This document shows, piece by piece, positions 1-60,875 of a stretch of 64,000 nucleotides of DNA. Position numbers and translations under genes: made by a program. Source of the DNA: Anaeramoeba ignava BMAN. Its lineage: Eukaryota > Protista > Anaeramoebae. Within the stretch, counting starts at the first letter, position 1; each line of letters starts with the position of its first letter. A model generated the notes under the pieces. The model did not search any database and was not told the origin of the DNA. It was given only the letters and a program-made list of their open reading frames with translations. The stretch spans positions 103,234 to 167,233 of the forward strand of contig JAPDFW010000121.1 in the NCBI GenBank assembly GCA_028826165.1, read 5' to 3'.

Positions 1-662
1 CATCCAAATAATTCTTGATTTGAATTTAAAAGAAAAACATGATCTGAAGAATTTCCTGAAAATATTTTAGAAACATTTTTCATCATTAAAATTGGTTTTT
101 GTGTTTTTGGAAATGTTTTAGAATCAAAACCAAGTTGACTATATTCATTTGAACCAATTCCATAAACATTTTGATTTGAAGTTAATAAATAAATCGAATT
201 AGCTCCAGAAACAACATCTTCAATTATTCTATCATTTTTATCTTCAATTAATGATGAAATATTGATAAATTCTTTTGGATTATTTGAATTAATATCGTAT
301 CCTTTTGCAAATACATTTCCTTCTATTGTTAAAATAGCTTCATTTCCCCAACCAACAGTTACTTTTTGAATATTTTCTTCAATTTGGATTTTTTTAGGTT
401 TTTGATTTGAATATTCTTCATTTAAATATTCTATTGCTTTTCCATTTTTAAAAAGGAAAATTGTTGAAAAACCTCCTGATGAAATTTGTTTAATTTGTTT
501 TTCATTTTCATTTTCATTTTCATTTTCATTTTCATTTTCATTTTCATTTTCATTTTCATTTTCATTTTCAAATTTAAATTGAATTGGTTTTGTTATTTTA
601 TCTGGTTTATTTTTGATAAGAATTGGATATTCATTTAAACCAAAAAATAAACAATCATTCAT
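1..662 (-). CDS. RCC1-repeat + BTB family protein, 5' part (truncated by window start)
   Basis: ATG at 662 reads MNDCLFFGLNEYPILIKNKPDKITKPIQFKF(EN)n-KQIKQISSGGFSTIFLF...; 1-480 is nearly identical to 2165-2640 of the neighbouring paralog. Confidence 0.9.
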   Translation of the reverse strand, partial: MNDCLFFGLNEYPILIKNKPDKITKPIQFKFENENENENENENENENENENENEKQIKQISSGGFSTIFLFKNGKAIEYLNEEYSNQKPKKIQIEENIQKVTVGWGNEAILTIEGNVFAKGYDINSNNPKEFINISSLIEDKNDRIIEDVVSGANSIYLLTSNQNVYGIGSNEYSQLGFDSKTFPKTQKPILMMKNVSKIFSGNSSDHVFLLNSNQELFG

Positions 663-699
663 TTTTGAAAAGAAAAAAATGAAAAAAATGAAAATGAAT

Positions 700-941
700 T
701 TTAATTTTAATTTTGATTTTAATTTTAATTTTGATTTTTGATTTTAATTTTAATTTTAATTTTAATTTTAATTTTAATTTTAATTTTAATTTTAATTTGA
801 ATTTGAATTTTAATTTTGATTTTGATTTTAATTTTGATTTTAATTTTAATTTTAATTTTAATTTTGATTTTAATTTTAATTTTAATTTTGATTTTAATTT
901 TAATTTTAATTTTAATTTTGATTTTAATTTTAATTTTAATT
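700..941. repeat. (TTTTAA/TTTTGA)n hexamer microsatellite forming the 3' tail of the 942-2777 gene
   Basis: Directly visible; begins at the stop codon of the minus-strand gene. Confidence 0.95.
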
Positions 942-2777
942 TTAATTTTGATTATTAAATTTTTTAATTAATAAATCAATTAAATTTGGATTTGTTTGAT
1001 TTAATTGAAAATAATCAATTCCTCTTTCTAATTCTTGAATAATTTCTTGTGTAATTTGAATTTCTTCTTTAATTTGATTTGAATAAATCCAATATTCAAA
1101 TATTTGAAATGATTTATTACTTAATTCACTATAATCTGTAACTTTATTAGATTTATCATTTGTAACAGATAAAAACATTCCTCGATATAATTCACTTCTC
1201 ATTATTAATATTAATTTAGGAAATTTATATTGTTTTTCTTTTCTTTCAATAATAAAATCTTTTTCATTTTCATTTTCATTTTCATTTAAATAAATTCTTT
1301 TCATTGTTTCTTCAATTTTTTCATTTGAATTTATAATTTCTTTAATTTCAGAATATAAATTTGGATTTATTATGGAATTGTTTGAATAAATCATTTCAAA
1401 TATTTGATTTGATTCTTTAATTGATTTATTTGAAATAATTTCTTGAAGTTTTTCAATTTGATTTTGATTTTGATTTAATCTATATTTCAATATTAATTTA
1501 TGAGCTTTGATTATTTCTCCATTTTCGGTTTTAAATGAAATATCACAAAATTCTTTTCTTCTAAATAATTTTATCAAATCTTCTTCAAGATTGGAAAAAG
1601 AAGGATAAGAATAATAAAGAAATGATCTGTTATATCCACAAGAAATATGATAATTGGAAATATTTTCATTAAATCTTAATTTAGGAAGTTCAATTTGAGT
1701 TGGAATTGATTGTTTATATGTATCTCCAATTCCTAATTGACCATAATTATTACGTCCAAATCCAATTAGTTTCCCTTTGGAAGTTAAAATCAAATTATGA
1801 AAGCATCCAACAGAAAAATCAAGAATATTATCATTTTCAAATAAAGATGATTTGATTTCAGTAAATTCATAAGTAGTTTCTTTTTTGCCAAGTCCATTAA
1901 ATTCAGAATTTCCACATGAATAAAGTTTTCTTTTTTCATTTTCATTTTCATTTTCATTTTCTTTTTCTTTTTCTTTTTCTTTTTCTTTTTCTTTTTCATT
2001 TTCATTTTCATTTTCATTTTCAATCATCATTATCGAATGTGCAATTCCACATTGAATATCAATTATTTTGCCTTTTGGAATATTTTGGATTTTGGTTAAT
2101 TTTTGGATTGTTTCTTCTTTTCTTAATTCTCCTAATCCAAGTTGACCATCACTATTTAATCCGCATCCAAATAATTCTTGATTTGAATTTAAAAGAAAAA
2201 CATGATCTGAAGAATTTCCTGAAAATATTTTAGAAACATTTTTCATCATTAAAATTGGTTTTTGTGTTTTTGGAAATGTTTTAGAATCAAAACCAAGTTG
2301 ACTATATTCATTTGAACCAATTCCATAAACATTTTGATTTGAAGTTAATAAATAAATCGAATTAGCTCCAGAAACAACATCTTCAATTATTCTATCATTT
2401 TTATCTTCAATTAATGATGAAATATTGATAAATTCTTTTGGATTATTTGAATTAATATCGTATCCTTTTGCAAATACATTTCCTTCTATTGTTAAAATAG
2501 CTTCATTTCCCCAACCAACAGTTACTTTTTGAATACTTTTTTCAATTTGGATTTTTTTAGGTTTTTGATTTGAATTTTTTAAATATTCTATTGCTTTTCC
2601 ATTTTTAAAAAGGAAAATTGTTGAAAAACCTCCTGATGAAATTTGTTTAATTTCATTTTCATTTTCTTTTTCATTTTCATTTTCAAATTTAAATTGAATT
2701 GGTTTTGTTATTTTATCTGGTTTATTTTTGATAAGAATTGGATATTCATTTAAACCAAAAAATATAATTTCATTCAT
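942..2777 (-). CDS. RCC1-like beta-propeller + tandem BTB-like domain protein (putative Cullin3 substrate adaptor)
   Basis: Intact 611-aa ORF; RCC1 motifs (GxNxxGQLGLG, CGxxHS, FGRNNYGQLGIG); C-terminal FCDISF...IKAHKLILKYR and KDFII...FPKLILIMRSELYRGMF are BTB-type. Confidence 0.9.
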   Translation of the reverse strand: MNEIIFFGLNEYPILIKNKPDKITKPIQFKFENENEKENENEIKQISSGGFSTIFLFKNGKAIEYLKNSNQKPKKIQIEKSIQKVTVGWGNEAILTIEGNVFAKGYDINSNNPKEFINISSLIEDKNDRIIEDVVSGANSIYLLTSNQNVYGIGSNEYSQLGFDSKTFPKTQKPILMMKNVSKIFSGNSSDHVFLLNSNQELFGCGLNSDGQLGLGELRKEETIQKLTKIQNIPKGKIIDIQCGIAHSIMMIENENENENEKEKEKEKEKEKENENENENEKRKLYSCGNSEFNGLGKKETTYEFTEIKSSLFENDNILDFSVGCFHNLILTSKGKLIGFGRNNYGQLGIGDTYKQSIPTQIELPKLRFNENISNYHISCGYNRSFLYYSYPSFSNLEEDLIKLFRRKEFCDISFKTENGEIIKAHKLILKYRLNQNQNQIEKLQEIISNKSIKESNQIFEMIYSNNSIINPNLYSEIKEIINSNEKIEETMKRIYLNENENENEKDFIIERKEKQYKFPKLILIMRSELYRGMFLSVTNDKSNKVTDYSELSNKSFQIFEYWIYSNQIKEEIQITQEIIQELERGIDYFQLNQTNPNLIDLLIKKFNNQN

Positions 2778-2807
2778 TTTTGAAATGAAAAAAATGAAAA
2801 ATAAAAA

Positions 2808-3168
2808 ATGAATTTTAATTTTAAATTTAATTTTAATTTTAATTTTAATTTTAATTTTAATTTTAATTTTAATTTTAATTTTAATTTTAATTTTAATTTT
2901 AATTTTAATTTTAATTTTAATTTTAATTTTAATTTTAATTTTAAATTTAATTTTAATTTGAATTTGAATTTTAATTTTAATTTTAATTTTAATTTTAATT
3001 TTAATTTTAATTTTAATTTTAATTTTAATTTTGATTTTAATTTTGATTTTGATTTTAATTTTGATTTTAATTTTGATTTTAAATTTAATTTTAATTTTAA
3101 TTTTGATTTTAATTTTAACTTTAATTTTAATTTTGATTTTAATTTTGATTTTAATTTTAATTTTAATT
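2808..3168. repeat. (TTTTAA)n hexamer microsatellite forming the 3' tail of the 3169-4908 gene
   Basis: Directly visible. Confidence 0.95.
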
Positions 3169-4908
3169 TTAATTTTGATTATTAAATTTGTTAATTAATA
3201 AATCAATTAAATTTGGATTTGTTTGATTTAATTGAAAATAATCAATTCCAGTTTCTATTTCATCGATAATTTCTTTTGTAATTTCAATTTCATCTTTAAT
3301 TTGATTTGAATAAATCCAATATTCAAATATTTGAAATGATTTATTACTTAATTCACTATAATCTGTAACTTTATTAGATTTATCTTCAGTTACAGATAAA
3401 AACATTCCTCGATATAATTCACTTCTCATTATTAATATTAATTTAGGAAATTTATATTGTTTTTCTTTTCTTTCAATTATAAAATCTTTTTCATTTTCAT
3501 TTAAATAAATTCTTTTCATTGTTTCTTCAATTTTTTCATTTGAATTTATAATTTCTTTAATTTCAGAATATAATATTGGATTTATTTTGGAATTATTTGA
3601 ATAAATCATTTCAAATATTTGATTTGATTCTTTAATTGATTTTTTTGAAATAATTTCTTTAAGTTTTTCAATTTCATTTTGATTTTGATTTAATCTATAT
3701 TTCAATATTAATTTATGAGCTTCAATTATTTCTCCATTTTTGGTTTTAAATGAAATATTGCAAAATTCTTTTCTTTTAAATAATTTTATCAAATCTTCTT
3801 CAAGATTGGAAAGAGAAGGAGAATAATAAAGAAATGATTTGAAATATCCACAAGAAATATGATAATTGGAAATATTTTCATTAAATCTTAATTTAGGAAG
3901 TTTAATTTGAATTGGAACGAATTGTTGTTCTGTATTTTCAATTCCTAATTCACCAAAATAATTATCTCCAAATACTATCAATTTCCCTTTGTAAGTTAAA
4001 ATCAAAGTATGAACATTTCCACAAGAAAAATCAAGAATATTATCATTTTCAAATAAAGATAATTTAATTTCAGTAAATTCATAGGTATTTTCTTTTTTGC
4101 CAAGTCCATTATTTTTCCAATAGCCACATGAATAAAGTTTTCTTTTTAGATTTTCATTTTCATTTTGATCTTCAATCAACATTACTGAAAAATACATTGA
4201 GGATTGAATATCAATTATTTTGCCTTTTGGAATATTTTGGATTTTGGTTAATTTATCGATTTTTTGAATAGCTTTCATTCCTAATCCGAGTTGACCATAA
4301 TAATTCCAACCACATGTAAATAATTCTTGATTTGAATTTAAAAGAAAAACATGAAGTGAAATATTTCCTGAAAATATTTTAGAAACATTTTTCATCATTA
4401 AAATTGGTTTTTCTGTTTTTTCAAGTGTTTCAGAATCAAAACTAAGTTGACCAAATTGATTTGAACCAATTATATAAGCATTTTGATTTGAAGTTAATAA
4501 GTAAATTGTACTGTTACTTGAAACAATATCTTGAATTATTCTATCATTTTTATCTTCAATTAATGATGAAATATTGATAAATTCTTTTGGATTATCTGGA
4601 TTAATATCATCTCCTTTTGCAAATACATTTCCTTCTTTTGTTAAAATAACTTCATTTTGATAACCAACAGTTACTTTTTGAATATTTTCTTCAATTTGGA
4701 TTTTTTCAGGATTTTGTTTTGAATTTTTTAAATATTCTATTGCTTTTCCATTTTTAAAAAGGAAAATTGTTGCTAAATAACCTGATGAAATTTGTTTAAT
4801 TTGTTTTTCATTTTCAAATTTAAATTTAATTGGTTTTTTTATTTTATCTGGTTTATTTTTGAAAAGTTTTGGATTATTATTTGAACCAAAAAATATAATT
4901 TCATTCAT
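3169..4908 (-). CDS. RCC1 + BTB family protein
   Basis: Intact 579-aa ORF collinear with 942-2777. Confidence 0.9.
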   Translation of the reverse strand: MNEIIFFGSNNNPKLFKNKPDKIKKPIKFKFENEKQIKQISSGYLATIFLFKNGKAIEYLKNSKQNPEKIQIEENIQKVTVGYQNEVILTKEGNVFAKGDDINPDNPKEFINISSLIEDKNDRIIQDIVSSNSTIYLLTSNQNAYIIGSNQFGQLSFDSETLEKTEKPILMMKNVSKIFSGNISLHVFLLNSNQELFTCGWNYYGQLGLGMKAIQKIDKLTKIQNIPKGKIIDIQSSMYFSVMLIEDQNENENLKRKLYSCGYWKNNGLGKKENTYEFTEIKLSLFENDNILDFSCGNVHTLILTYKGKLIVFGDNYFGELGIENTEQQFVPIQIKLPKLRFNENISNYHISCGYFKSFLYYSPSLSNLEEDLIKLFKRKEFCNISFKTKNGEIIEAHKLILKYRLNQNQNEIEKLKEIISKKSIKESNQIFEMIYSNNSKINPILYSEIKEIINSNEKIEETMKRIYLNENEKDFIIERKEKQYKFPKLILIMRSELYRGMFLSVTEDKSNKVTDYSELSNKSFQIFEYWIYSNQIKDEIEITKEIIDEIETGIDYFQLNQTNPNLIDLLINKFNNQN

Positions 4909-4972
4909 TTTTTAAAAGAAAAAAATGAAAAAATAATTTTGAATTTTTAATTTTTAATTTTAATTTTAGTGA

Positions 4973-7877: not shown

Positions 7878-8080
7878 TTGTTAAAGAAAAAAAATGAAAA
7901 AATGAAAAAATGAAAAAATATTTTTTCCGATTTCTTTAAATTTATTTTTTTTCGTTATTTCAAGATTAAAAATGAATGCTTTTAAAAATCAAAAATCAAA
8001 AACTCAAAAACCGAAATTAAAAGAAAAATGAAGAAAGAAAATGAAAGAAAAAAAAAAAGAAAAATCATTTTTAAAGAAGA

Positions 8081-9295
<1,215 letters not shown>

Positions 9296-11874: not shown

Positions 11875-13352
11875 TTAATTTGAATCCAATTCATTCAATT
11901 CACTTTCTGATTCAGTAAAATCTTCTAAATCAGTAATTTTTGATTTTGATTTTGATTTTGATTTTGATTTTGATTTTGATTTTGAAATATAATTTGCATC
12001 AAGAAATTCATCTTCATCAAGTAAAGTATCATTAATTGTTGTTTGATCAAAGTTTTTTTTAGACCATTTTCTTTTTAAAGAAGAAATAATTTGATGTCTT
12101 ATTGATTTTACAAAAACAATAAAAATGAGAAAATCCCAAATTCCTTGACTTGGAACAAGAAAAGCTTGAAGAACATCAAGTGTTGTTGAATGTGATACAT
12201 CAGGTTTAATTAATTCTCTGAATCTTTTTACTGTTGATGGAATTGCTATTACTAAATAAACTAATGGAATTAATGTCATTCTTAATTGTACTTTCAGTTT
12301 TTCTTTTTTTCGTCTTTTATCTGAATCTCTTGCTAAATTGGATACTGATTTATATACTTTTCTTATCTTATAAAGACAGAAAATGTAAATTATTAATAAT
12401 ATAACAAGGAAAAACCACCAAATTGAATAAACTGTCCACATTAGATGTGATTCATTTGTATAACACCTTTTTTATTTTAATTTTGATTTTAATTTTAATT
12501 TTAATTTTAATTTTGATTTTGATTTTGATTTTGATTTTAATTTTGATTTTGAATTTAAATTTTGATTTTGATTTTGATTTTGATTTTAATTTTGATTTTA
12601 ATTTTCATTTTGATTTTGATTTTGAATTTGAATTTGATTTTGATTTTGATTTTAATTTTAATTTTAATTTTAATTTTGAATTTGAATTTTGATTTTGATT
12701 TTGATTTTAATTTTAATTTTGATTTTAATTTTGATTTTGATTTTGATTTTGATTTTAATTTTGATTTTGATTTTGATTTTGATTTTGATTTTGATTTTTA
12801 ATTTTGATTTTAATTTTAATTTTGATTTTAATTTTGATTTTAATTTTGATTTTAATTTTAATTTTGATTTTGATTTTGATTTTGATTTTGATTTTAATTT
12901 TAATTTTGATAAAGAAATGAAATAAAAATATACCAATAAGCTCCACCTTTTTTAGGAGAAGCAAAAACAATCCAAATAACACATAAAACAGCAGATAAAA
13001 AAACAGTAAAAACATGGAGTCTTTTTTGTAAATAATTACAAAAAGAATCACGAGTATTAAAAACAATTTTCAAAAAAGTAATAAAAGAAACAGAAGCAGT
13101 CCAAGAAGGAGTAGCACCCAACATAACGCTTATCCAAACAACTTGCACTGAGCAGAGATTATCATTTGAGGGTCCTGGCAATGAAAAAGAAAAGGATAAA
13201 AGAAAATCATATATTGATAAAATAAAGATTAATTTTCGAAATAAATTTCTTAATGATGGATAAGCTATATGTGTTGCCATAATTCCTATTGACCCCATCA
13301 TGCTAAGAATTCCACTTGTTATTGTTAATCCTGCTAATAATCTATAACTCAT
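11875..13352 (-). CDS. 7TM G-protein-coupled receptor, cAMP-receptor-like/GCR1/Git3 type (2 exons)
   Basis: Exon 1 13352-12934, intron 12933-12467 (hexamer repeat), exon 2 12466-11875. Seven hydrophobic segments; motifs LSMMGSIGI, RKLIFILSIYD, LCSVQ, YWCY, IPLVYLVIAIPSTVKR, PSQGIWDFLIF. Confidence 0.85.
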
Positions 13353-13720
13353 TTTTTTTTTGTTTTTTAATAAGATCAAATAATTATTTTAAAAAAAAAG
13401 GAAAAGAAAAAAATAAATTAATTTTTTTTTTTTTGCTTTTTTTTCTTTCTTTTTGAAATCTTTTATTTTTTTTTATTTTCAAAAAAGATCAAAAAATAGA
13501 ACAAAAAAACATTATTACATTGAACAAAAATTTTGAATTTTGATTTTAATTTTGATTTTGATTTTAATTTTGATTTTGATTTTGATTTTGATATTGGATT
13601 TGGATTTTGATTTTGATTTTGGATTTTGATTTTAATTTTAATTTTGATTTTAATTTTGATTTTAATTTTGATTTTGAGTTTGATTTTAATTTTGATTTTG
13701 ATTTTGATTTTGATTTTTAG

Positions 13721-16700
13721 TTATTTTTTGAATGAATTTTTTTTCAGATTTAATTTCAAATTTAAATGAATTTTTTGATTTTCTTCAATTTGATGTTCAT
13801 TTTCAATTTGATTTTCATTCTGATTTTCATTTTCATTTTCTTGAAAATCCAAACCACTTTTCGAATCTTCAGATTCAGTAAAATTTTCTAAATCAGTCAT
13901 TTTATATTTTGAAAAATTTCTTGTAACTTTTGAATGATCCACATTATCTTCATCAAGTAAAATATGATCAACAGTTGAAGAATCTGAATTTTCTTTAAAG
14001 CATTTTCTTTTTAAAGAAGAAATAATTTGATGTCTTATTGATTTGACAAAAACAATAAAAATAAGAAAATCCCAAATTCCTTGACTTGGAAGAAACCAAG
14101 CTTGAAGAACATCAAGGGTTTTGGATGAAGATACATTCGGTTCAACTAAAGAACGAACTCTATTTATTGTTGATGGAAGTGCTAATACTAAATAAACTAA
14201 TGGAATTAATGTCATTCTTAATTGTATTCTTAGCTTTTCTTTCTTTTTCCTTTTTTCTGAATCTCTTGCTATATTTGATACTGATTTATTAATTCTGATC
14301 TTTCGAATACATAAAACGTAAATTATTAATATTATAACAAGGAAAAACCACCAAATTGAATAGATTGTCCAAATAAGAAATGCTTCTTTTGGATAACACC
14401 TTTTTAATTTTAATTTTGATTTTGATTTTGATTTTAATTTTGATTTTGATTTTTAATTTTGATTTTAATTTTGATTTTGATTTTAATTTTCATTTTGATT
14501 TTGTAATTTTGATTTTGATTTTGATTTTGATTTTGATGATTTTGATTTTGATTTTATTTTTTTGAATTTTTGACCTTTTGATTTTGATTTTGATTTTGAT
14601 TTTGATTTTGATTTTGATTTTAATTTTGATTTTGATTTTGATTTTAATTTTGATTTTAATTTTGATTTTGATTTTAATTTTGATTTTGATTTTGATTTTG
14701 ATTTTGATTTTGATTTTGATTTTGATTTTAATTTTGATTTTGATTTTTATTTTGATTTTAATTTTTTTGATTTTTTGAATTTAATTTTGATTTTGATTTT
14801 GATTTTGATTTTGATTTAATTTTGATTTTGATTTTAATTTTGATTTTGATTTTGATTTTGATTTTGATTTTGATTTTGATTTTGATTTTGATTTTGATTT
14901 TGATTTTGGATTTTAATTTTGATTTTAATTTTAATTTTGATTTTGATTTTGATTTTAATTTTGATTTTTAATTTTGATTTTGATTTTAATTTTGATTTTG
15001 ATTTTGATTTTAATTTTGATTTTAATTTTGATTTTTGATTTTGATTTTGATTTGAATTTTAATTTTTGATTTTTTTGATTTTGATTTTGATTTTTGATTT
15101 TGATTTTGATTTTCATTTGATTTTAATTTTTGATTTTTAATTTTGAATTTTGATTTTGATTTTGATTTTTGATTTTGATTTTGATTTTAATTTTGATTTT
15201 GATTTTAATTTTGATTTTGATTTTGATTTTGAATTTGATTTTGATTTGATTTTGATTTTAATTTTTTGAATTTTGATTTTTGATTTTGATTTTTGATTTT
15301 TGATTGATTTGACAAAATTTTGATTTTGAAAATCCCAAATTTTTTTTTGATTTTTTAATTTTGATTTTGATTTTTAATTTTGATTTTGATTTTAATTTTG
15401 ATTTTGATTTTGATTTTGATTTTAATTTTGATTTTGATTTTGATTTTGATTTTGATTTTGATTTTGATTTTGATTTTGATTTTGATTTTGATTTTGATTT
15501 TGGAATTTTGATTTTGATTTTGAATTTTGATTTTGATTTTGATTTTTGATTTTTGATTTTGATTTTTGGATTTGATTTTGATTTTGATTTTTGATTTTGA
15601 ATTTGAATTTTGATTTTAATTTTGATTTTAATTTTGATTTTGATTTTAATTTTGATTTTAATTTTGATTTTAATTTTGATTTTGATTTTGATTTATATTT
15701 TGATTTTGATTTTGATTTTGATTTTGATAAAGAAAGGAAATAAAAATATACCAATAAGAACCACCTTTTTGAGGAGAAACAAAAACAATCCAAATAACAC
15801 AAACAATAGTAGATAAAATTTTAAAAATGAGTTTTAAATAATTACAAAAAGAATCAATTTCAAAAACAATTTTTAAAAGAAACAGAAGCAGTCCAAGAAG
15901 GAGTAGCAGTTAACATCACAGCATTTCAGTTTTTTTTGACAATTTTATTTTTGATTTAATGAAAAGATAAGGATAAAAGATTTTGATTTTGATTTTTAAT
16001 TTTTTTAAATTTGGATTTTTGATTTTATGTTGCCATAATTTTTGACCCAAATTTAGCTAATGTTCCACTTGTTATTGTTAATGCTTCATAGCTTTTTATT
16101 TTCATTTTATATTTTTGATTTTATTTTTGATTTTATTTTGCTTTTTTTTAGGAATTTTTGATTTTGATTTTGAATTTGGAAAAAATTTAATTTTTTCAAA
16201 TTTTGATTTTCTTTTTTTTAATTTTTTATAATTTTAAATAAATTTATTTATAAATAATAATTTAATATTAAATTTTGATTTTAAATTTTGATTTACATTT
16301 ATATTTCAATATTTAATTTAAATATTTATAAATAATTTTTGATTTTTATTTTTTTGATTTTTAAATAATTTTGATTTTTAATTTTAAATTTTAATTAGAA
16401 AATGATATAATAAAAAGGATTTTGATTTTAATAATTTAATTATAATTTTGATTTTAAATTTAATTTTAAATAAATTTATTTTAAATAATTTTAATTTTAA
16501 TTTTAGAAAATTTTAAAAGGGTAAATTTTAATTTTTATTTTAATTTTAATTAAATAAAAATTTTTTGATTTTGATTTTTATTTAAATTAAATTTTTTAAA
16601 TTTTAATTCTGTTTTTGATAAAGAAAGGAAATAAAAATATACCAATAAGAACCACCTTTTTGAGGAGAAACAAAAACAATCCAAATAACACAAACAATAG

Positions 16701-44387: not shown

Positions 44388-47300
44388 ATGGATAAAAATA
44401 ATCAAAAAAGGAAAAAAAAGAATAACAAAAAAAAACAACAACAACAACAACAACAACAAGAAAAACAAGAAAAACATGAAAAAAATGTGAATAAAAAGAA
44501 TAAGGATAAAAATAGAAAGAATAATCAAAATGAACAAGAAAAAAATAAGGATAAAAATAAAAAGGATAAAAAGAATAATCAAAATGAACAAGAAAAGAAT
44601 AAGGATAAAAAGGATAAGAAGAATAATCAAAATGAACAAGAAAAACATGTGAATAAAAAGAATGAAAAGAAAAAGGATAAAAAGAATAAGAATAAAAAGA
44701 ATGAAAAGGATAAAAAGGATAAAAAGGATAAAAAGGATAAAAAGGATAAAAAGGATAAAAATAAAAAGGATAAAAATAATAATCAAAATGAAAAAGAAAA
44801 GGATAAAAATAAAAAGAATGAAAAGAATGAAAATAAAAAGAATGAAAAGAATAATCAAAATGAACAAGAAAAGAAAAAGGATAAAAAGAATAAGGATAAA
44901 AATAAAAAGGATAAAAATAATAATCAAAATGAACAAGAAAAGAAAAAGGATAAAAAGAATAAGGATAAAAATAAAAAGAATAATCAAAATCAAATTCAAA
45001 ATCAAAATCAAAATCAAATTCAAATTCAAAATGAAAATCAAATTCAAAATCAAAATCAAATTCAAATTCAAAATCAAAATCAAAATCAAAATGAAAACCA
45101 AAATGAAAATCAAAATCTAAATCAAAATGAAAATGAAAATCAAAATCAAAATCAAAATCAAAATCAAAATGAAAATGAAAATGAAAATGAAAATCAAAAT
45201 CTAAATTCAAAACAACAAAAACAAGAACAAAAAAAAAAAACAAAACAAAAACAAGAATTAATCCAAAAGATCCAAAAAATAGAAGAAGAAACTAAAACAA
45301 TAATCGAAAAAATCAAATCATATCAGAATGATCCTAAATATAAAATATCTATAAACGAGTTCAAAGAACAAAAACAACTGAAAATCAAAACAATCGAAAA
45401 TTTAAATACAATATACAAAGATGCAAAAAAATTGCTCAAAGATTACAAAAATATACATATGGACTTGAGCGGAGAACAAGGAGAAAATGATAATTCACCT
45501 TCTGATCCACTTTCCAAAAAAATACCAAATTTATATCGAATTATAACAGTGATAAAGGATTTATTTGAAGCAACATCTATTGATAAATGTGTTATTGAAA
45601 AAGGTCAAATTCATCGTCTTTTTACAAACGAAAAAATGGAAAGACTTAAAGATGAGAAAATGACAATAATTCAATTTGATGAATTAAATAAGAAAAAATT
45701 CCATCCTATCGGTGTTTATGGAACAAAAGAAGCAGTATTACAATTTCTTGGGAAATTATCACCGAAATTTTATGGAGATTTAAAGGAATTTACGCCAAAG
45801 ATGGAACCAGGATTATATTTGTGGATTAACAAAAAAACAAAATCCAAACGCTTTGAAAATATCATATTTTTATGGCCAGGTCATTTTGAAATATTTGCTT
45901 CTAATCAAAGAAGTTCTATTATTACACTTTTATTGAGATTTTTATATGAGCTTTGTGATGAAGTTGTGCTATTTTATGATGAAAAAGAGCAATTCCCAAG
46001 TAATTTGATTAGCAATGAAAATATATTCTATGAAAAACAAAAAAGATTCAACAAACATTTTCCTTGTATGATTGATTTCAAACCTGTATTAAGTTCACAA
46101 GGAGATGAATTTCGAATTACAAAAGGATTTTCAACCCGAAATTCAATCCCTTTAAATTCACCATTTTTCGATAGTAATGCCCAGCTTTTGTTTACTAAGG
46201 GATGGCTGAAAAAAGAATTTCTTTTCAGAACACAAACAGAATTTGGACTGAATACCATCGAAAGCTCTAAAACAATCAATCAAGATTCTAGTCAATTTTT
46301 GAAGGTTTTCGAGAAGAAACAAGTATTATTCGATCAACTGAATGATAATGATTTAATTAACTTTATTAAAATTTTGAGGAAATGGAGAAACGAAATGAAA
46401 AAAAACACTCCTAAGAATTTGATTCATAAAATCGTTTCCATCCCAGAAATTTCCAATATAAAAGCAAAAGAAAAAATCGATTTGAAAATTATTAGAAAGA
46501 AAATGAGAGATGTTTTCAAAGATGAAAATCAAGATGCAAATGTAATTTGGAATATCACCAAATTTATTTCTGTAAGAAAAAATTACTTTTCCTCTTACTC
46601 TATTGAGATTCATTACAAGGAAAAGAGATTAATTGAAGGAATGATTGAATATCAAACTTACAGAATAATCATTCCAACTCAATCAATGGAAAAATTAGGG
46701 ACATATGCCGATACCCCTGATTCAGATAAAAGCATTGCAAAAATTCCAATGAATCTTCTTTTATCCAAAAAATGGATTGATTCAAAAATTGATCAAAATC
46801 TTGTTTTCCTTTATATTTTCCAAAAAGGAGATGCAATTAAAGCAACAGAAACCCAAGTTGATCATGAAATTTTCACAAGAATTTATCATCTTGATCCATC
46901 AAAACCTTACACTGATACAAATCAACCATTAACTAATATAATTCCTGGGAAAATTCCATTCATTTCATTTGACGAAACTAGTTCAATTCTTGCTTTATAT
47001 CAAATCATTGGAAGAAAAGGAAAAAATAGAAATAACAATAACAATAACAATAACAATAACAATAATAATAATAACAACAACAAATTTTCCCATAACTTAA
47101 ACATTTTCCAATACGACCAAGACACAAAAACATTAACTGAAATTTATACAAAAGAACTAACACAACTTTGGTCAGAAGCAAATGAAACAGGACAGCCAAT
47201 TCTTCAACAACTTCATGTTGTTCCCAATAAAAGAGATATCTTGTTACTTCGTAAAAATAAACTTTTGTTATTCCATCTTTCAGATCTTTCCATTGATCGT

Positions 47301-50300
47301 GAAAACCTCGATTTATCCAATTTGGGTTATAAAGAAGGAACACTGAATATTATGTTTACGACACACCCTTTCCTTCTATTATTATATTACAATTCTTTAG
47401 AAAATCAATGGATTCTTCAAATAATCACAATATCAACTGAATTTGAAACAAATACAAGAATCTTCCAGAATATCAAAACAATGAAACTTCCAGATTCTAA
47501 CATCTCTGATAAAACACAATTCTCAATATTTCAATTACAAGGACTAAATTTTATTGTTGGATTTGATAGCGAGAACAAGAAGCAACACATAATCTGTTAC
47601 AGAATAATCATTAAAACAAAACAAGGAACAATTACAACAAAATCATCAATTAGATTTTTCGAAAAGAACCCAAATATTGAGGCTATTCCTTACTCTTTAA
47701 ACTCTTTACTCGATTACTGGTATTTCATTTTCGACAAATTTCCGACTTATTCCAAATATTCATTGCCTCAAAGAGAATCAACACTAAATATTGTACTTTC
47801 CGATAATACAATTTTGAAAGAACCCGAGAAAATTATAAACTATTTGCGAAGTATATTTAGCGAAGATATAAAGAAGCCAATTAGTAAAATCAAAATTAAT
47901 TTTGAGGTTTCCACTTTAACTAAATTCAGTAAATCCAAGATTTTTAATTCAGATAATTTATGGCCTTTCGGAGATTGGCTTCAGAAATTGATTTGTTTGA
48001 TTCCTTTACAAATTGCAAGGTTTTATTATGAAGATTTTCTTCCATTAGCTGATGGAGCTCAGTTTGATTGGCTAAGTGATCTTTCCAAAGCAGAAAAAGT
48101 GGAAGAAAATATATTTGCGATGAGAGCATATGAATTAGCAGAACAAATTAGATTTGGATTATATGAATCGATATTTAATTTCTATCAAGTACCTGTTATA
48201 GTGATATCATGTAGTGGAAATCAATCAAGTGGGAAAAGTACTTTTCTGAATCATTTAGCTGGGTAAAAATCAATATTCCAAAAATATTCCAAAAATATTC
48301 AAATTATTAATTAAATTAATAATATTTAAATTAATTAAATTAAATTAATTAAATTATTAATATTTAAATTAAATTAATTAAATTAATAATATTTAAATTA
48401 TTAATTAAATTATTTAAATTAAATTAATTAAATTAATATTTAAATTATTAATATTCAAATTAATAATATTCAAATTAATAATATTCAAATTAATAATATT
48501 CAAATTATTAATATTCAAATTAATAATATTCAAATTAATATTCAAATTATTAATATTCAAATTAATATTCAAAGTTCATTCTTCGATGTTGCTGGTGGAA
48601 GATGTACTGATGGCGTTTGGATGACTGTTAGATACTCTCCGGAAGAAAAAAAATTATTCACATTTTTAGATTTTGAAGGATTGGGAAGTTTTGAAAAAAC
48701 ACAACAACAAGACATGATGTCAGCATTATTTGGAGCAGCAGTTAGTAATCTAATGATTTTAAGAACAACAATGCAATTTGATAGATATACAAGAACAATG
48801 CTAGAAAATTGGGCAGCAGGAGCAAGACATCTTAAATTTGAAGAAAGTAAATTTTTGTTTGGAGGAAGACTGCTGTTTAATCCAAGAGATTGCCAATTGA
48901 GTCAACTTGAATCTGTCGGGAATTCTTTTGGACAAAAATGTTCAGAAACAATTTTGAAATATAATGATAATTTAAGAAAAGGAAAAAGAAAACAATCCGA
49001 AAAAGAAGAAAAATTATTATTATCAATGTTTAAAAGATTATCAACAATCCCATTTCCAACATTCCCTTCAGATGAATATTTCAAATATATTGATTATGTT
49101 ATTCCGCAAGCAACAAAACCAAGATTTGAAACTGGAACAATTTTTTTGACTCATGTCAAACAATTTTTAACCCAACTATCAATCAAAGATTTTGGATCCA
49201 TTGATAAAGCATATCAAGAAAAAGCAAAGAATTATATAAAAGCCATTCTGGATGATGTAATTCATGGAGGAGGATTTTCTCCTTTTGAAATGGAAAAAAT
49301 TGATCCACAAAATTTGAAGAAATGGAAAGAACAAATGCAAAAACCAAGAATTTCTTTACAAAAATACAATGCGGTTGTTGAAGAAGAAACTTCACTTTTG
49401 TTTACATTTAAACTTTCGAAAAAGGAAAGCAAACTATTTCAAGAGAATCAAGTGAAGAATAACAACAAAAAGGATGATTCCAAAGTTGTTAGTAATGAAA
49501 AACGAGAATGGACAATCCAAATTTTAAATTATGAAGATTCGGGATTATTATTTGGACCAATAAGAGGGATGAAAATTGATAAAGAATCAGAAGATGAATT
49601 CATGAACTCTTTGGTTCTGATCCAAAAGGATTTTTTTGAGCAGAATATTCTGCCAAGAAAAGAAGGATATTATGAGATTTGGCACAAAATTTTCCAATCT
49701 TTCCTCAAAGCACTTATTAAACGAAGAACAAAAAAAGCAATAAAATGGATTGAGTCTTGGAAGAAAGAATTCGAGGAGGGATTCCAAGGAATAGGAAAAG
49801 GAGAGTTTGAAACAATTGAAAGAGAGATTAAGGAGAAGTGCAAAACACTGAAAAATCAATGGATATTATGTCCAATTCGATGCGATAAGTGTTTTTTCAA
49901 GTGTTTGCATCTTAAAGAACATTCCAAAAAAACACCCCATGATTGTTTCAATGGAACCCACCAGTGCCAACATAATTGTGAATACTGCGAAAAAGAAAAC
50001 ATCATTACCAAGTGCATATTTCAATTAGGACATCATGGAAAGCATATTTGCAATAAACCGCACACTTGTGGAAAAACTTGTTCATTATCCAAATTTACAA
50101 ATTGCCAGCAAATATGCTGTTTGGACCAAGGACACACAGGACCTTGCATGTGCAATATTGGAGAGAATAACCATCTTTGTGGAAAGCCTTGCTCAGTTAG
50201 TTTTGAATCAATCATTAATGAAAATGGAGACAAACAAAAAATTACTTGCCAAGAAAAATGCACTTTACCTTATAATCACAAAAAGCCTTGCGATTGCCAA

Positions 50301-51921
50301 AAAATTGGATGTCCTGCAAAATGTCCGATTTGCGGAAATCCTTGCAAATCGAATGATCATTTCCACGGAATGAAAGAACCAAATGCTATTCATTTTTGTG
50401 GAAGAGAGCATATTTGCATTCATGAATGCCAACAAGGAATATGCCAAATTGATAACCGAAGAATTTTCGGTAAAAAAGTTGTGAAAACAATTTCGGGACA
50501 AGAAATTGAGTTTAATGAATACACAGAACAAAACGGGAAGCATAAACAATGTGTATTAAAAATTCCGCCAAACAAATTCACTCATCAAGAACAGCACACT
50601 TGCTTAATTGAGGGACAATATAATCCCAATAAGGAATATCATTATTGCGGTTATCAATGCAAATCCTGTGGATATTTCTGTTCTCTTCCAAAAGGCCATA
50701 CTGGGTCTCATTTTTGTCAACATGGAAATATGAGAAATAGCACACTTGTTACTCAGAAAGGACAAGATACAATTCAATTCAATAAAATCAACTTACGAAC
50801 AGGCGAAAGTGCAAAACCCTTCATATGCACTCATCAATGCATTCTTTTTGGAAGAGGTCACATGCACTTGATCCCAAAGGATTTCGACTTGAGTCATGTT
50901 CCTGAAGAAGACAGAAAATATATCAGACCTGCTAAGAACGAATATAGCGATAATCGCGAATATTATGAGTCAACTTGCTATTTTTATTGGAAGTATTATC
51001 TCCAATTCGAAAGTGGATTTAGCGAAGAGGAAAAAGAGGAATTCAAGCTTTGTGGAGCAATGTGCGGCTCCAAATTCCATGAAAATGAAGAAGATAAGCT
51101 GCAGGAAAACAACCAACAGCCAATAAACGTTGAACAAATTGTTTCCAAAAGAAATACTCAACATTCGCCTTATTGTGTTCTTGAAATGTGGCATGATTTA
51201 TGGGATCCAAAAGAAATGCCTGATGGACAAAGACAAGGTTATACTTCAACAGATGGTCATTTCTTTCCTTGCAATCATCCCAATGCTGGTGGATTTGCAA
51301 ATTATCACCACTATCTTGTTATTGACAGATCAAGTTCAATGGAGAGGTGGTGATTCCAAACCATCTCAATATGATTGGATAAAGAACTCAAATAATAACA
51401 GATTGGGTGCAGTTTATGAATGTTGTATCAACTACTTAGATTTAAGATTGCAAAATAATAAAGAAGATAAATGCTCTTTTGTTGTTTTTGATAATAAAGC
51501 TGATCTGCTTTTTGAATCAAAAACAGTCGATCCAAATTTAATTCGAGGTTATTGCCAGAATATAAAACCAAGAGGAGGAACTTCATTTGGAACAGGATTT
51601 CAAGTTGTTTTTGATTTACTAAGCAGATTAAATGAACAAGAAAAACAAGCAAGACCTGTTATTGTTCTTTTAACTGATGGTCATGATGGAAATACTCAAA
51701 ACACTCTGAATATTCTTCAAGAAAAAGTTCCTCAATTTCCTGATCTTGTTATTCATACTGTTGGATTTGGTTTAGGTGCAAGTCGTACATTTTTAGAACA
51801 AATTGCTAATTTGGGAAAAGGTAAATTTCATCAAGCAAACGATGATATTCAATTAGCTGAAGTTTTCAAAAGTCTTGCTAAAGAACCAGCAAAAGGAGGA
51901 TTTGTTTTAGAAAAGAAATGA
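44388..51921 (+). CDS. Very large (~2400 aa) protein: K/N/D/Q-rich N-terminus, GBP/VLIG/atlastin-type P-loop GTPase, Cys/His-rich repeats, C-terminal vWA domain
   Basis: Intron 48263-48574 joins [16 protein letters not shown]|[16 protein letters not shown]...LDFEGLGS (G1-G3); Cys-rich region ~49860-51290; VIDRSSSM / GGTSF / LLTDG vWA MIDAS motif, reached through a 1-nt frameshift at ~51342. Confidence 0.82.
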
Positions 51922-51929
51922 ATTTATTT

Positions 51930-51962
<33 letters not shown>

Positions 51963-53087: not shown

Positions 53088-53204
53088 TTTTTAAATAAAT
53101 AAAAAATAAAAAAAAATAAAAAAAATAAAAAAAAATTTTTTCTTTTATACTGAGAAGTGATCTTTTTCACGGCTTAAACGAAAAAAAAATAAATAAAAAA
53201 CTTT

Positions 53205-54792: not shown

Positions 54793-54895
54793 GGCAAAGG
54801 AATTGTTCTTTATTTCTTTAAGAAAAATGTAATCTAAAAAAAAAAGAAAAAGTGGAAAAAAAATTTGGAAAATGTTTTTAATTTTTAGTTGTTAA

Positions 54896-56923: not shown

Positions 56924-57144
56924 TTTCTATTTTTATTTTTATTTTTTGTTTTTTCAATTTTTATTGAAATTTTTATTTAGAAACTAATGTATTGAAAAAA
57001 GAAAAAAAATGAAAAAATGAAAAATTAAAAAAATTTTTTTATTTATTTAAATTTTAGTGAGTCATCATTAAAAATTTTTTTTAGGGATTATTTTGTAAAA
57101 TAAAAAAATTAGTCATTTTTAAAATTAAAATTAAAATTCCAAAA

Positions 57145-57175
57145 TATCATTTTTTCATTTTTTTTCTTTTCAAAA
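57145..57175 (+). promoter_or_regulatory. Example of the T-rich TCATTTT initiator-like element upstream of start codons
   Basis: atcattttttcatttttttcttttcaaaaATG; similar tracts precede most ATGs in the window. Confidence 0.4.
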
Positions 57176-58940
57176 ATGAATGATTGTTTATTTTTTGGTT
57201 TAAATGAAAAACCGATATTAATCAAAAATGAACGAGAAAGAATAACAAAACCAATTCAATTTAAATTTGAAAATGAAAATGAAAAACAAATTAAACAAAT
57301 TTCTTCTTCAAGTGATTATTCAATAATTTTCCTTTTTGAAAATGGAAAAGTAATGGAATATTTAAATGATTCAAAACAAAATCCTCAAAAAATCCAAATT
57401 GAAATTGAAAATATTCAAAAAGTAACTGTTGGTTTTGCAAATGTAACTATTTTAACAATAGAAGGAAATGTATTTGCCAAAGCAAGATATATTAATCCAA
57501 ATAATCCAAAAGAATTTATCAATATTTCATCATTAATTGAAGATATAAATGATAGAATAATTGAAGATATTGTTTCTGGATGGGGTTCAATTTATTTATT
57601 AACTTCAAATCAAAATGCTTATGGAATTGGTGATAATTATGATAGTCAACTTGGTTTTGATTATAAAACACTTGATAAAACAGAAAAACCAATTTTAATG
57701 ATGAAAAATGTTTCTAAAATATTTTCAGGAAATTGTTCAACTTATGTTTTTCTTTTAAATTCAAATCAAGAATTATTTGTATGTGGTGGAAATTTTTCAG
57801 GTAGACTTGGATTAGGAGAATCAAGAAAAGAACAAAAAATTGAAAAATTAACCAAAATCCAAAATATTCCAAAAGGTAAAATAATTGATATTCAATGTGG
57901 AAATTTCCATTCAATAATGTTGATTGAAAATGAAAATCAAGATGAAAATCCAAAAAGAAAACTTTATTCATGTGGAGATTATCATTGGAATGGACTTGGC
58001 AAAAATGAAAATACTTATGAATTTACTGAAATTAAATCATCTTTATTTGAAAATGATGATGATATTCTTGAAATTTCTGTTGCATATAAGCATACTTTGA
58101 TTTTAACTTCAAAAGGGAAATTAATTGGATTTGGATTAAATGATTGTGGTCAATTAGGAACTGGAAATACAGAATATCAATCAATTCCAATTCAAATTGA
58201 ACTTCCTAAATTAAGATTTAATGAAAATATTTCTAATTATCATGTTCTTTGTGGTGCTTTTTACAGATCATTTCTTTATTATTCTCCTTCTTTTTCCAAT
58301 CTTGAAGAAGATTTGATAAAATTATTTAGAAGAAAAGAATTTTGTGATATTTCATTTAAAACCGAAAATGGAGAAATAATTGAAGCTCATAAATTAATAT
58401 TGAATTATAGATTAAAAGATCAAAATCAAATTGAAATTGAAAAACTTCAAGAAATTATTTCAAATAAATCAATTCAAAGAATCAAATCAAATATTTGAAA
58501 TGATTTATTCAAATAATTTCAAAATAAATCCAATATTATATTCTGAAATTAAAGAAATTATAAATTCAAATGAAAAAATTGAAGAAACAACGAAAAGAAT
58601 TTATTTAAATGAAAAAGATTTTATAATTGAAAGAAAAGAAAAACAATATAAATTTCCAAAATTAATATTAATAATGAGAAGTGAATTATATCGAGGAATG
58701 TTTTTATCTGTAACAGAAGATAAATCAAATAAAGTTACAGATTATAGTGAATTAAGTAATAAATCATTTCAAATATTTGAATATTGGATTTATTCAAATC
58801 AAATTAAAAATGGAATTAAAATTACACAAGAAATTATTGAAGAATTAAAAAGAGGAATTGATTATTTTCAATTAAATCAAACAAATCCAAATTTATTTGA
58901 TTTATTAATTAATAAATTTAATAATCAAAATCAAAATTAA
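57176..58940 (+). CDS. RCC1 + BTB family protein with a 1-nt frameshift at ~58475
   Basis: TCAATTCAAAGAATCA versus TCAATTAAAGAATCA in paralogs; ORFs 57176-58498 and 58431-58940 join. Confidence 0.85.
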
Positions 58941-59096
58941 AATTTAAATTAAAATTAAAATTCAAAAAGAAAAAAATAAAATTAAAATTAAAATTAAAAT
59001 TAAAATTAAAAATCAAAAATTAAAATTAAAATTAAAATCAAAATCAAAATTTATTTTTTTCATTTTCATTTTTTTCATTTTTTTTCTTTTCATAAA

Positions 59097-60875
59097 ATGA
59101 ATGAAATTTTATTTTTTGGTTCAAATAAATATCCAATTTTTTTCAAAAATAAACCAGAAGAAATAACAAAACCAATTCAATTTAAATTTGAAAATGAAAA
59201 TGAAAAACAAATTAAACAAATTTCATCTTCAAATTATTCAACAATTTTCCTTTTTGAAAATGGAAAAGCAATAGAATATTTAAGTGAAAATGATTCAAAT
59301 CAAAATCCTTCAAAAATCCAAATTGAAGAAAATATTCAAAAAGTAACTATTGGTTATAGAAACGAAGCTATTTTAACAAAAGAAGGAAATGTATTTGCCA
59401 AAGGAATATATATCAATCAAGATAATCCAAATCAATTTATCAATATTTCATCATTAATTGAAGATAAAAATGATAGAATAATTCAAGATATTGTTTCCGG
59501 ATATAACACGATTTACTTATTAACTTCAAATCAAAATGCTTATGGAATTGGTGATAATTATGATAGTCAACTTGGTTTTGATTATAAAACACTTCAAAAA
59601 ACACAAAAACCAATTTTAATGATGAAAAATGTTTCTAAAATATTTTCAGGAAATTGTTCAACTTATGTTTTTCTTTTAAATTCAAATCAAGAATTATTTG
59701 GATGTGGTGGAAATTTTTCAGGTAGACTTGGATTAGGAGAATCAAGAAAAGAACAAAAAATTGAAAAATTAACCAAAATCCAAAATATTCCAAAAGGTAA
59801 AATAATTGATATTCAATGTGGAAATTTCCATTCAATAATGTTGATTGAAAATGAAAATCAAGATGAAAATCCAAAAAGAAAAGTTTATTCATGTGGAGAT
59901 TATCATTGGAATGGACTTGGCAAAGATGAAAATACTTATGAATTTACTGAAATTAAATCATCTTTATTTGAAAATGATGATATTCTTGAAATTTCTGTTG
60001 CATATAAACATACTTTGATTTTAACTTCCAATTCAAAATTAATAGTATTTGGATTAAATGATTGTGGTCAATTAGGAAATGGAGATACAAAAAATCAATC
60101 AATTCCAATTCAAATTGAACTTCCTAAATTAAGATTTAATGAAAATATTTCCAATTATCATGTTCTTTGTGGTGCTTTTTACAGATCATTTCTTTATTAT
60201 TCTCCTTCTTTTTCCAATCTTGAAGAAGATTTGATAAAACTATTTGAAAGAAAAGAATTTTGTGATATTTCATTTAAAACCGAAAATGGAGAAATAATTG
60301 AAGCTCATAAATTAATATTGAAATATAGATTAAAAGATTATGAAAATCAAATTGAAAAACTTCAAAAAATTATTTCAAAAAAATCAATTAAAGAATCAAA
60401 TCAAATATTTGAAATGATTTATTCAAACAGAATAATAAATTCAAAATTATATTCTGAAATTAAAGAAATTATAAATTCAAATGAAAAAATTGAAGAAACA
60501 ATGAAAAGAATTTATTTAAATGAAAATGAAAATGAAAATGAAAAAGATTTTATAATTGAAAGAAAAGAAAAACAATATAAATTCCCTAAATTAATATTAA
60601 TAATGAGAAGTGAATTATATCGAGGAATGTTTTTATCTGTTACAGAAGATACTTCAAATAAAGTTACAGATTATAGTGAATTAAGTAATAAATCATTCCA
60701 AATATTTGAATATTGGATTTATTCAAATCAAATTAAAGAAGAAATTAAAATTACGAATAAAATAATCAAAGAACTTGAAAGAGGAATTGATTATTTTCAA
60801 TTAAATCAAACAAATCCAAATTTATTTGATTTATTAATTAAAAATTTAATAATCAAAATCAAAAATCAAAATTAA
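59097..60875 (+). CDS. RCC1 + BTB family protein
   Basis: 592-aa ORF; the last codons are probably shifted by a missing A (LIKNLIIKIKNQN versus LIKKFNNQN). Confidence 0.9.
   Translation: MNEILFFGSNKYPIFFKNKPEEITKPIQFKFENENEKQIKQISSSNYSTIFLFENGKAIEYLSENDSNQNPSKIQIEENIQKVTIGYRNEAILTKEGNVFAKGIYINQDNPNQFINISSLIEDKNDRIIQDIVSGYNTIYLLTSNQNAYGIGDNYDSQLGFDYKTLQKTQKPILMMKNVSKIFSGNCSTYVFLLNSNQELFGCGGNFSGRLGLGESRKEQKIEKLTKIQNIPKGKIIDIQCGNFHSIMLIENENQDENPKRKVYSCGDYHWNGLGKDENTYEFTEIKSSLFENDDILEISVAYKHTLILTSNSKLIVFGLNDCGQLGNGDTKNQSIPIQIELPKLRFNENISNYHVLCGAFYRSFLYYSPSFSNLEEDLIKLFERKEFCDISFKTENGEIIEAHKLILKYRLKDYENQIEKLQKIISKKSIKESNQIFEMIYSNRIINSKLYSEIKEIINSNEKIEETMKRIYLNENENENEKDFIIERKEKQYKFPKLILIMRSELYRGMFLSVTEDTSNKVTDYSELSNKSFQIFEYWIYSNQIKEEIKITNKIIKELERGIDYFQLNQTNPNLFDLLIKNLIIKIKNQN

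Follow-up and report, generated by a model that had tools for sequence, protein, structure and literature searches.

What keeps most of a gene nearly identical from copy to copy while about forty of its codons differ among its members? The question is raised by a 64,000-nt stretch of the Anaeramoeba ignava BMAN genome (assembly GCA_028826165.1, contig JAPDFW010000121.1, positions 103,234 to 167,233 of the forward strand; hereafter the window, with coordinates counted from its first letter), in which several genes encode an RCC1-type beta-propeller followed by two BTB domains. A reading made from the letters of this stretch alone (the sequence-only reading) had seen in these genes antibody-like hypervariable loops on a candidate Cullin-3 recognition system. 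In our analysis, there is good support for the diversification of one propeller face on a scaffold that is kept homogeneous among the copies. We consider it fairly probable that this pattern reflects concerted evolution combined with diversity-enhancing selection on a binding face, with the BTB tail serving as a Cullin-3 dock and each copy as a substrate receptor of a Cullin-3-RING ubiquitin ligase (CRL3). An immune-like function is advanced as a hypothesis.

The window holds seven copies of the gene, of which three are intact, two are frameshifted by a single base, and two are cut by the window edges. These copies, together with the parts of the one used as reference, are as follows (ORF, open reading frame):

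6-662, minus strand: edge-cut family copy, propeller residues 1-197 (tblastn with the 579-aa copy, 70% identity).
942-2777, minus strand: intact RCC1-BTB-BTB gene, 611 aa (ORF; Pfam WD40_RLD, RCC1 and BTB; alignment).
3169-4908, minus strand: intact RCC1-BTB-BTB gene, 579 aa, the reference copy (Pfam, AlphaFold2, Foldseek).
4908-3823, minus strand: propeller of the reference copy, aa 1-362.
3822-3544, minus strand: BTB1 of the reference copy, about aa 363-455.
3543-3172, minus strand: BTB2 of the reference copy, about aa 456-579.
4909-4935, minus strand: family-specific conserved upstream core CATTTTTTTCTTTT, -20 to -5 before the ATG.
23040-24798, minus strand: frameshifted copy, otherwise full length, with a +1 shift from an extra T in ATT/GGT near 24355 (sequence).
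57176-58940, plus strand: frameshifted copy, otherwise full length, with a +1 shift from an extra C after ATT near 58474 (ORFs, sequence, tblastn).
59097-60875, plus strand: intact RCC1-BTB-BTB gene, 592 aa, in tandem with the copy at 57176-58940 (ORF, Pfam).
63932-63997, minus strand: C-terminal end (aa 550-571) of an edge-cut copy (tblastn, 91% identity).

The remainders of the first and last copies lie beyond the left and right window edges, respectively. Pfam assigned the window copies an RCC1-like domain (PF25390, PF00415, PF13540) and then BTB in two stretches, and the frameshifted copy at 23040-24798 reads as two overlapping ORFs, with tblastn pieces at 24798-24352 and 24350-23055. The upstream core is at least 90% conserved among 67 copies and was present before five of the six window copies examined; the edge-cut copy at 6-662 carries it. 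Every motif series quoted in the sequence-only reading was found at equivalent alignment columns of the window copies. Of the five full-length paralogs it had counted, those at 942-2777, 3169-4908, and 59097-60875 are intact, while those at 23040-24798 and 57176-58940 are frameshifted, and the span of 1-60875 that it gave to the family also contains many unrelated genes. The variable family it described is real; the scale of this family and its concerted evolution by gene conversion had been overlooked.

To describe the variability we used 70 intact genomic copies, enlarged to 126, these being the best-scoring and mostly intact copies out of about 1,200. Among the 592 alignment columns of the 70 copies, 408 had an entropy below 0.5 bit and 39 had at least 2 bits, the variable columns being grouped as short patches inside the RCC1 half. 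The near-invariant framework and BTB half with short variable windows, as first noted on the window paralogs, hold far beyond chance in these genomic copies. In the set of 126, 40 positions were hypervariable, each with 8-17 residue types (at least 10 everywhere except position 105) and with entropy reaching 3.65 bits, and all 126 hypervariable signatures were distinct. The residues at these positions were Tyr (19%), Asn (15%), Lys (10%), Ser (8%), Glu (8%), Asp (7%), and Ile (2%), compared with 4% Tyr and 16% Ile in the framework; Asn, Asp, and Ser were also enriched relative to the framework, and Trp and His showed no notable enrichment. Such a composition is typical of binding surfaces, beyond what A+T bias alone would give. 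The loops had been called rich in Tyr, Trp, Phe, His, and Asn, which holds for Tyr and Asn and not for Trp and His. The label antibody-like is apt only for the pattern, in which a constant fold bears Tyr-rich variable loops; the diversity lies in the germline, distributed across about 1,200 genes, with no somatic process indicated.

The variable positions are not spread evenly over the fold. An AlphaFold2 model of the reference copy (predicted local distance difference test score, pLDDT, 89.9; predicted template modelling score, pTM, 0.79) contains 26 strands in seven blades, and the modelled propeller has the usual N/C-terminal closure. Using Foldseek, the model matched the RCC1-like domains of RPGR, RCC1, and HERC2 (template modelling score, TM, by target of 0.74-0.83) and UVR8, with a TM by target of 0.61-0.83 across the 50 matches listed. 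Each blade is a four-strand meander, and therefore successive connections alternate between the two propeller faces. Of the 38 hypervariable positions on the model, 35 are in loops and three at strand ends, and all 35 loop positions fall in the S1-S2 and S3-S4 connections (110 residues), with none in the S2-S3 and S4-S1 connections (84 residues; Fisher p = 2e-10). In the S1-S2 hairpins the sites are the two variable residues of G-x-x-H, and within the S3-S4 loops they occupy G-x-N-x-x-G and the positions immediately ahead of strand 4. By HMMER alignment, the G-x-x-H pair corresponds to the W-R of the GWRHT motifs of UVR8, and the residue after the strand-3 Gly (G-x-N) to the UVR8 Trp after WG; we take these UVR8 residues to be its dimer and partner-binding face. 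Mean entropy was 1.34 bit in the loops of the variable face, 0.32 in those of the other face, 0.38 in the strands, and 0.19 in the BTB half. Mapping the variable sites on a predicted structure, as the sequence-only reading had advised, thus placed them at repeat-equivalent positions in the loops of one propeller face.

The framework codons are under purifying selection, with a nonsynonymous divergence (dN) of 0.011 and a synonymous divergence (dS) of 0.087 (ratio 0.13). At the hypervariable codons (n = 38), the proportion of nonsynonymous differences (pN) was 0.48 and dN was 0.77, with fourfold-site diversity at 0.079-0.093. The amino-acid distance at hypervariable positions was 0.79, equal in the closest and farthest pairs and uncorrelated with framework distance (r = 0.00). 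Set against 0.08-0.09 for fourfold-site diversity, this distance excludes relaxed constraint as the sole cause. Stop-free frames were found in 64 of the 75 best copies, compared with at most 3% in a neutral simulation at the observed silent divergence. By parsimony on the tree, we counted 3.5 synonymous changes per synonymous site, with 0.40 nonsynonymous changes per site in the framework, and 68 codons at which nonsynonymous change is in excess (ratios 3-8.6, Bonferroni p < 0.01), 59 of which lie in the propeller half (aa 1-362). Of these 59 propeller codons, 44 are on the variable face and three on the other (p = 6e-10). The expectation that loop positions evolve far faster than synonymous sites is borne out by these figures (dN of 0.77 against dS of 0.087, 68 codons in excess). 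The standard PAML site models would be unsafe here because the copies recombine. Saturation of silent sites by A+T bias was considered as a cause of the low dS and rejected, as the choice of A or T at fourfold sites is itself conserved.

How the scaffold stays so similar is indicated by the silent variation, which resembles the neutral polymorphism of a pool whose members recombine freely. On the concatenated tree, which has a star-like shape, 91% of the length is terminal and four of 67 nodes are supported. Among 51 fourfold sites away from variable codons in the 70 copies, 59% were monomorphic and six were at intermediate frequency; at the same nucleotide diversity (pi), the monomorphic fraction expected is 5% under a star model and 68% in a coalescent pool. 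Watterson's theta (0.085) is near pi (0.079), and beyond 10 nt the squared correlation (r2) between common variants is no different from that of unlinked sites. Exchange was visible directly between the tandem pair of window copies:

57677-58051, plus strand: gene-conversion tract in common with 59598-59972 (pairwise alignment of the tandem pair).

This tract carries 4 differences in 375 nt, compared with 10.5% outside it, and includes the hypervariable residues of blades 4-5. About 16 of 7,875 pairs of copies had stretches of 8-18 hypervariable residues in common, where a control with shuffled columns gave one or two, and three of the listed top pairs are on the same contig. From the frequency spectrum, the linkage disequilibrium (LD), the conversion tract, and the shared blocks, the copies thus behave as alleles of a recombining population, that is, under concerted evolution, with multi-allelic diversity at the loop positions 4-9 times the neutral level. 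A star burst, i.e., amplification followed by independent divergence, was hinted at by the star-like tree and the lack of LD and was rejected on the monomorphic fraction (59% against 5% expected). The same counts bear on the idea that the loops are unconstrained and have simply decayed neutrally after a recent amplification burst, with neither selection for diversity nor gene conversion. A star-like tree and the fact that propeller loops are usually the least constrained part of the fold fit such decay, but loop codons differ about nine times more than synonymous sites, although dN cannot exceed dS under neutrality; loops on the other face vary as little as the strands (0.32 vs. 0.38 bit); 59% of fourfold sites are monomorphic; and a conversion tract is visible in the window. 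We regard neutral decay as already refuted and give it hardly any weight. As a mark of a mobile unit, the (AAAATY)n hexamer arrays on both sides of the genes were likewise discarded, since the same arrays fill intergenic spacers across the whole window.

Selection is not the only process that might concentrate change in loop codons. A mutational or short-patch templated process focused on these codons, such as conversion or error-prone repair at defined motifs, could make them hot spots whose residues are merely tolerated. Up to two codons away from a hypervariable codon, silent diversity is indeed 2-5 fold higher, rising from 0.013 to 0.069 at twofold sites (p = 7e-7) and from 0.086 to 0.164 at fourfold sites (p = 8e-4), linkage is gone beyond about 10 nt, and neighbouring hypervariable positions are weakly coupled, all of which speaks for such a process. 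However, nonsynonymous diversity is still about 2-5 fold above the adjacent synonymous diversity, even when measured against the raised level beside hypervariable codons, and codon pairs for the same residue differ only 1.5 times more at hypervariable codons than in the framework. Aliphatics are avoided (Ile 2% vs. 16%) and Tyr, Asn, Asp, and Ser favoured despite equal A+T bias. Gly third positions beside hypervariable codons are in disequilibrium with the particular neighbouring variable residue (z up to 10.7), as for old maintained alleles. Finally, distances from the modal codon (zero steps in 35%, one in 37%, two in 24%, and three in 5%) are graded rather than random, the distribution of point change and not of wholesale replacement. 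Adenine mutagenesis of the kind made by diversity-generating retroelements (DGRs) was rejected on the variant pattern, with no search made for a template repeat or a reverse transcriptase: one-step variants arise from A (93), T (60), and C or G (27), and third codon positions also vary. Because T is a starting base alongside A, the variants do not resemble DGR products, which also counts against focused mutation. A mosaic of ancient loop cassettes was set aside too, adjacent hypervariable positions being weakly coupled and none coupled beyond three residues. The local silent rise and the Gly disequilibrium match what diversity-enhancing selection with tight linkage predicts, and focused mutation would look similar; on balance, we think it improbable that focused mutation alone explains the loops.

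What the constant half of the protein does is a separate matter. A model of the tail (aa 363-579; pLDDT 92.4) gave as its best whole-length fold matches 4u2m and 4u2n (TM by query of 0.55-0.66), which are engineered single-chain Miz1-BCL6 and Miz1-Nac1 BTB heterodimers; given this match to tethered BTB dimers, BTB1 and BTB2 therefore probably form an intramolecular pseudo-dimer. Single-domain fold matches included the SPOP BTB (from a Cullin-3 complex) and KBTBD4, which is also the nearest relative of BTB2 by sequence (E = 0.005), and two helices come after BTB2 in the model. The architecture has a human precedent in RCBTB1, an RCC1-like domain (RLD) with two BTB domains, described as a putative CUL3 substrate adaptor (PMC4974088). 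In the A. ignava genome, a search taking one open frame at a time with exons unjoined found a Cullin-3-like open frame at G000:C58 (L073:1645-3192), scoring 428 bits to Cullin-3, 363 to Cul4, and 300 to Cul1; the other cullins are Cul4-like or Cul1/2-like. With the BTB fold, the RCBTB-like architecture, and this Cullin-3-like gene, a Cullin-3 adaptor role for the family is plausible. The cullin set itself is unusually rich, with at least four Cul4-like loci, and a Cul1-like gene at G000:C57:231551-239837 is a tandem duplicate, its exon matches forming two almost identical sets separated by about 6 kb.

The family could instead consist of real diversified binders that are not Cullin-3 adaptors, with the BTB-BTB tail as an intramolecular scaffold or another interaction module and with sequestration, localisation, or signalling as the mode of action. 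In favour of such a role, BTB1 and BTB2 pair as in a BTB dimer, the phi-x-E motif shows no clear conservation, and a subset of copies ends in a polybasic stretch followed by CLIF, CFIF, or CSIF. Against it stand the link of the RCBTB1 RLD-BTB-BTB architecture to CUL3, the closeness of BTB2 to KBTBD4 in sequence and to SPOP and KBTBD4 in fold (all Cullin-3 adaptors), and the Cullin-3-like gene in the genome; moreover, the near-invariant tail implies one common partner. We hold binders of this kind to be unlikely, though less so than the other alternatives weighed here. The subset with the C-terminal polybasic stretch and CaaX box (CLIF, CFIF, or CSIF) comprises 15 of the 126 copies (about 12%) and none of the window copies, and its members are predicted to be prenylated and membrane-anchored. 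Two CaaX-bearing copies (L016 and L067) lie at G000:C122:92086-95817, about 8 kb left of the window.

The window copies belong to what, judged by sequence, is a lineage-specific family of about 1,200 genes. Searching the 42.8-Mb assembly for conserved 26-mers with up to two mismatches, we found 1,274 matches to a BTB2 marker and 1,151 to a propeller marker, with none for a reversed-pattern control; the BTB2 marker thus exceeds the propeller marker by about 120 matches. The matches lie on most contigs, often as same-strand arrays with a period of about 2 kb, and the family totals about 2.1-2.3 Mb, or roughly 5% of the genome. Scaling from the 612 genes that the published A. ignava genome paper equates with 4.1% of genes, the family makes up about 8% of genes. 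At least 850 members are in the public protein collection. Of 20 more distant full-length relatives looked up, 19 were from A. ignava (27-42% identity) and one from A. flamelloides, and a search from the latter returned only about six mutually divergent RCC1-BTB proteins in that sister species (22-33% identity). With so few and such divergent relatives in A. flamelloides, the amplification belongs to the A. ignava lineage alone. A. ignava also encodes Armadillo-RCC1-BTB fusions (P0124 and P0128, named 'aardvark') and a 215-aa fragment named 'ankyrin repeat-containing' (P0157). The main text of the genome paper contains no occurrence of RCC1 or BTB, related PANTHER names appearing only in a lateral-transfer table, and our literature search found no paper mentioning both 'Anaeramoeba' and 'RCC1'. 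Over the reference copy (3169-4908), the public contigs of one sequencing run form more than 1,000 short pieces whose summed depth is 10-100 times higher on the propeller than on the BTB half; this skew is possibly an assembly artefact, the unitigs being drawn from a family of 1,200 copies, and is not readable as expression.

Taken together, the picture that we favour for these genes, diversity-enhancing selection acting on a homogenised family of putative CRL3 receptors, is as follows. Each gene encodes a seven-bladed RCC1-like propeller with two BTB domains probably packed as a pseudo-dimer. The copies evolve as a single recombining pool, in which gene conversion or unequal exchange keeps the scaffold, the BTB tail, and the promoter-proximal core almost identical, while about 40-60 codons, all on one propeller face, are held maximally different between copies, so that each copy bears its own Tyr/Asn/Asp/Ser-rich surface. 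This diversity would be maintained by selection on a protein-binding face, and recombination would shuffle loop variants into new combinations. The constant BTB tail may dock the variable binder onto Cullin-3, in which case each copy would be a CRL3 substrate receptor with its own target. More speculatively, the targets may be fast-changing foreign or selfish proteins, whether of viruses, prey bacteria, a symbiont, or mobile elements. A. ignava is a free-living anaerobe that farms bacterial symbionts.

Several points caution against this account. The 70-126 copies studied are the best-scoring, mostly intact subset of the family. The assignment of the variable sites to a face rests on strand topology and the UVR8 alignment, their exposure being predicted from that topology. 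Recombination breaks the tree assumption behind the parsimony site test, and therefore dimorphic sites (e.g., residues 4 and 378) may be false positives, which multi-allelic sites cannot be. The 2-5 fold rise of synonymous diversity within two codons of the hypervariable codons makes focused mutation inseparable from selection with tight linkage. For the Cullin-3 dock, an ungapped and ambiguous alignment to KBTBD4 places T-E-D opposite the L-K-E of the phi-x-E site, with V-T-E one residue upstream. Exact-protein look-ups of the family gave no match, and transcriptome (EukProt) entries were found only for divergent relatives.

A bolder form of the same idea combines germline, combinatorially reshuffled intracellular recognition with a dedicated short-patch exchange or focused diversification mechanism that would hold about 1,200 propeller faces apart and wipe out every other difference, membrane anchoring of some receptors by prenylation, and Cullin-3-dependent ubiquitination of the foreign proteins that each receptor matches, whether from viruses, prey bacteria, or symbionts. 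We regard this combination as a long shot; if true, it would give a protist the equivalent of an immune repertoire, with a ubiquitin-ligase adaptor as its base.

The window has a base composition of 80-92% A+T, and between the family copies lie unrelated genes, including those for a mitochondrial-type Hsp70, an actin-like protein, a RasGEF, WD40 proteins, and others. The (AAAATY)n microsatellites form 74 arrays in most intergenic spacers (e.g., 8228-8693, 12479-12907, 14406-15694, and 42609-43641), and their orientation follows the strand of the neighbouring genes, with minus-type arrays in the minus-gene half and plus-type arrays in the plus-gene half. Three further features were noted:

11875-14215, minus strand: two adjoining ORFs with a near-identical transmembrane C-terminal part resembling G-protein-coupled receptors, a local duplication.
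44388-51921, plus strand: three consecutive or overlapping long ORFs, which may be one gene with frameshifts or introns, with a Lys/Asn-rich low-complexity head, a P-loop-like motif, a Cys/His-rich NF-X1-type zinc-finger-like region, and a vWA-like end.
62520-62975 and 63207-63662, minus strand: tandem duplicates with an N-terminal ubiquitin-like domain followed by YQTNPT/YQSNPT repeats, differing mainly in repeat number.

Should the favoured account of the family be true, A. ignava would devote about 8% of its genes to one receptor-like family with an unvarying ligase-docking tail and a saturated variable face, which would place it with the larger and sharper of the germline recognition repertoires known from organisms other than animals and plants. 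It would open to test the cytosolic recognition of foreign proteins by unicellular eukaryotes, expanded cullin adaptors as defence receptors, and the joint action of gene conversion and selection in holding a scaffold constant and chosen residues maximally diverse. As a natural library, the family reveals positions of the RCC1 fold that tolerate any residue, which is useful for binder engineering.

Among known proteins, human RCBTB1, RCBTB2, and IBtk, putative CUL3 substrate adaptors, share with the family the domain order (a seven-bladed RLD, then BTB1 and BTB2) and a length of about 530-600 aa. The likeness to RCBTB1 and RCBTB2 is one of architecture, the animal genes being single-copy and conserved while the A. 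ignava family has about 1,200 copies with hypervariable loops, and the nearest full-length relatives found were other A. ignava proteins (27-42% identity). UVR8, a plant RCC1-fold photoreceptor, served as a structural comparison to name the face and has no functional relation to the family. A resemblance in evolutionary behaviour is seen to the expanded and positively selected Cullin-RING adaptors, namely the nematode F-box and MATH-BTB proteins and the grass MATH-BTB proteins (PMC8120010, PMC4091423), which combine a constant cullin-docking module with a fast-diversifying substrate domain, lineage-specific tandem expansion, and a proposed anti-foreign role. Each of those families has between tens and a few hundred genes, whose divergence is ordinary and runs through the whole protein, whereas in A. 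ignava the scaffold keeps about 95% identity at silent sites too, the variability lies within about 40 codons, and the binder is an RCC1 propeller.

A match in mode of evolution is the HNWD family of Podospora anserina (het-d/het-e/het-r), whose WD40 repeats have four hypervariable surface positions per repeat and undergo concerted evolution and positive selection (PMC1805685, PMC2873952). Both systems have a beta-propeller kept near-identical by sequence exchange, with a few diversifying positions per repeat grouped on the interaction face. This raises the alternative that the A. ignava genes serve conspecific self/non-self discrimination, or form a selfish family of a drive or toxin-antidote-like kind, as with the fungal het-d/het-e. 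The evolutionary syndrome matches that of the Podospora WD40 repertoire (PMC1805685), but about 1,200 loci are far above known allorecognition systems and Pfam detected no death-effector or NACHT domain, and we find such a role doubtful. The mechanics also differ: the fungal exchange takes place among the repeats of about ten genes that carry NACHT and death-effector domains, whereas in A. ignava whole genes of a 1,200-member family are homogenised, with an RCC1 fold, a BTB-BTB output, and no involvement of repeat-induced point mutation (RIP). With only RLD and BTB by Pfam and without the architecture of NOD-like receptors (NLRs), the A. ignava family works like the HNWD kind and is not a member of it. 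In fold, scale, silent-site identity of the scaffold, and host, it differs from the RCBTB, HNWD, and nematode and grass adaptor systems alike.

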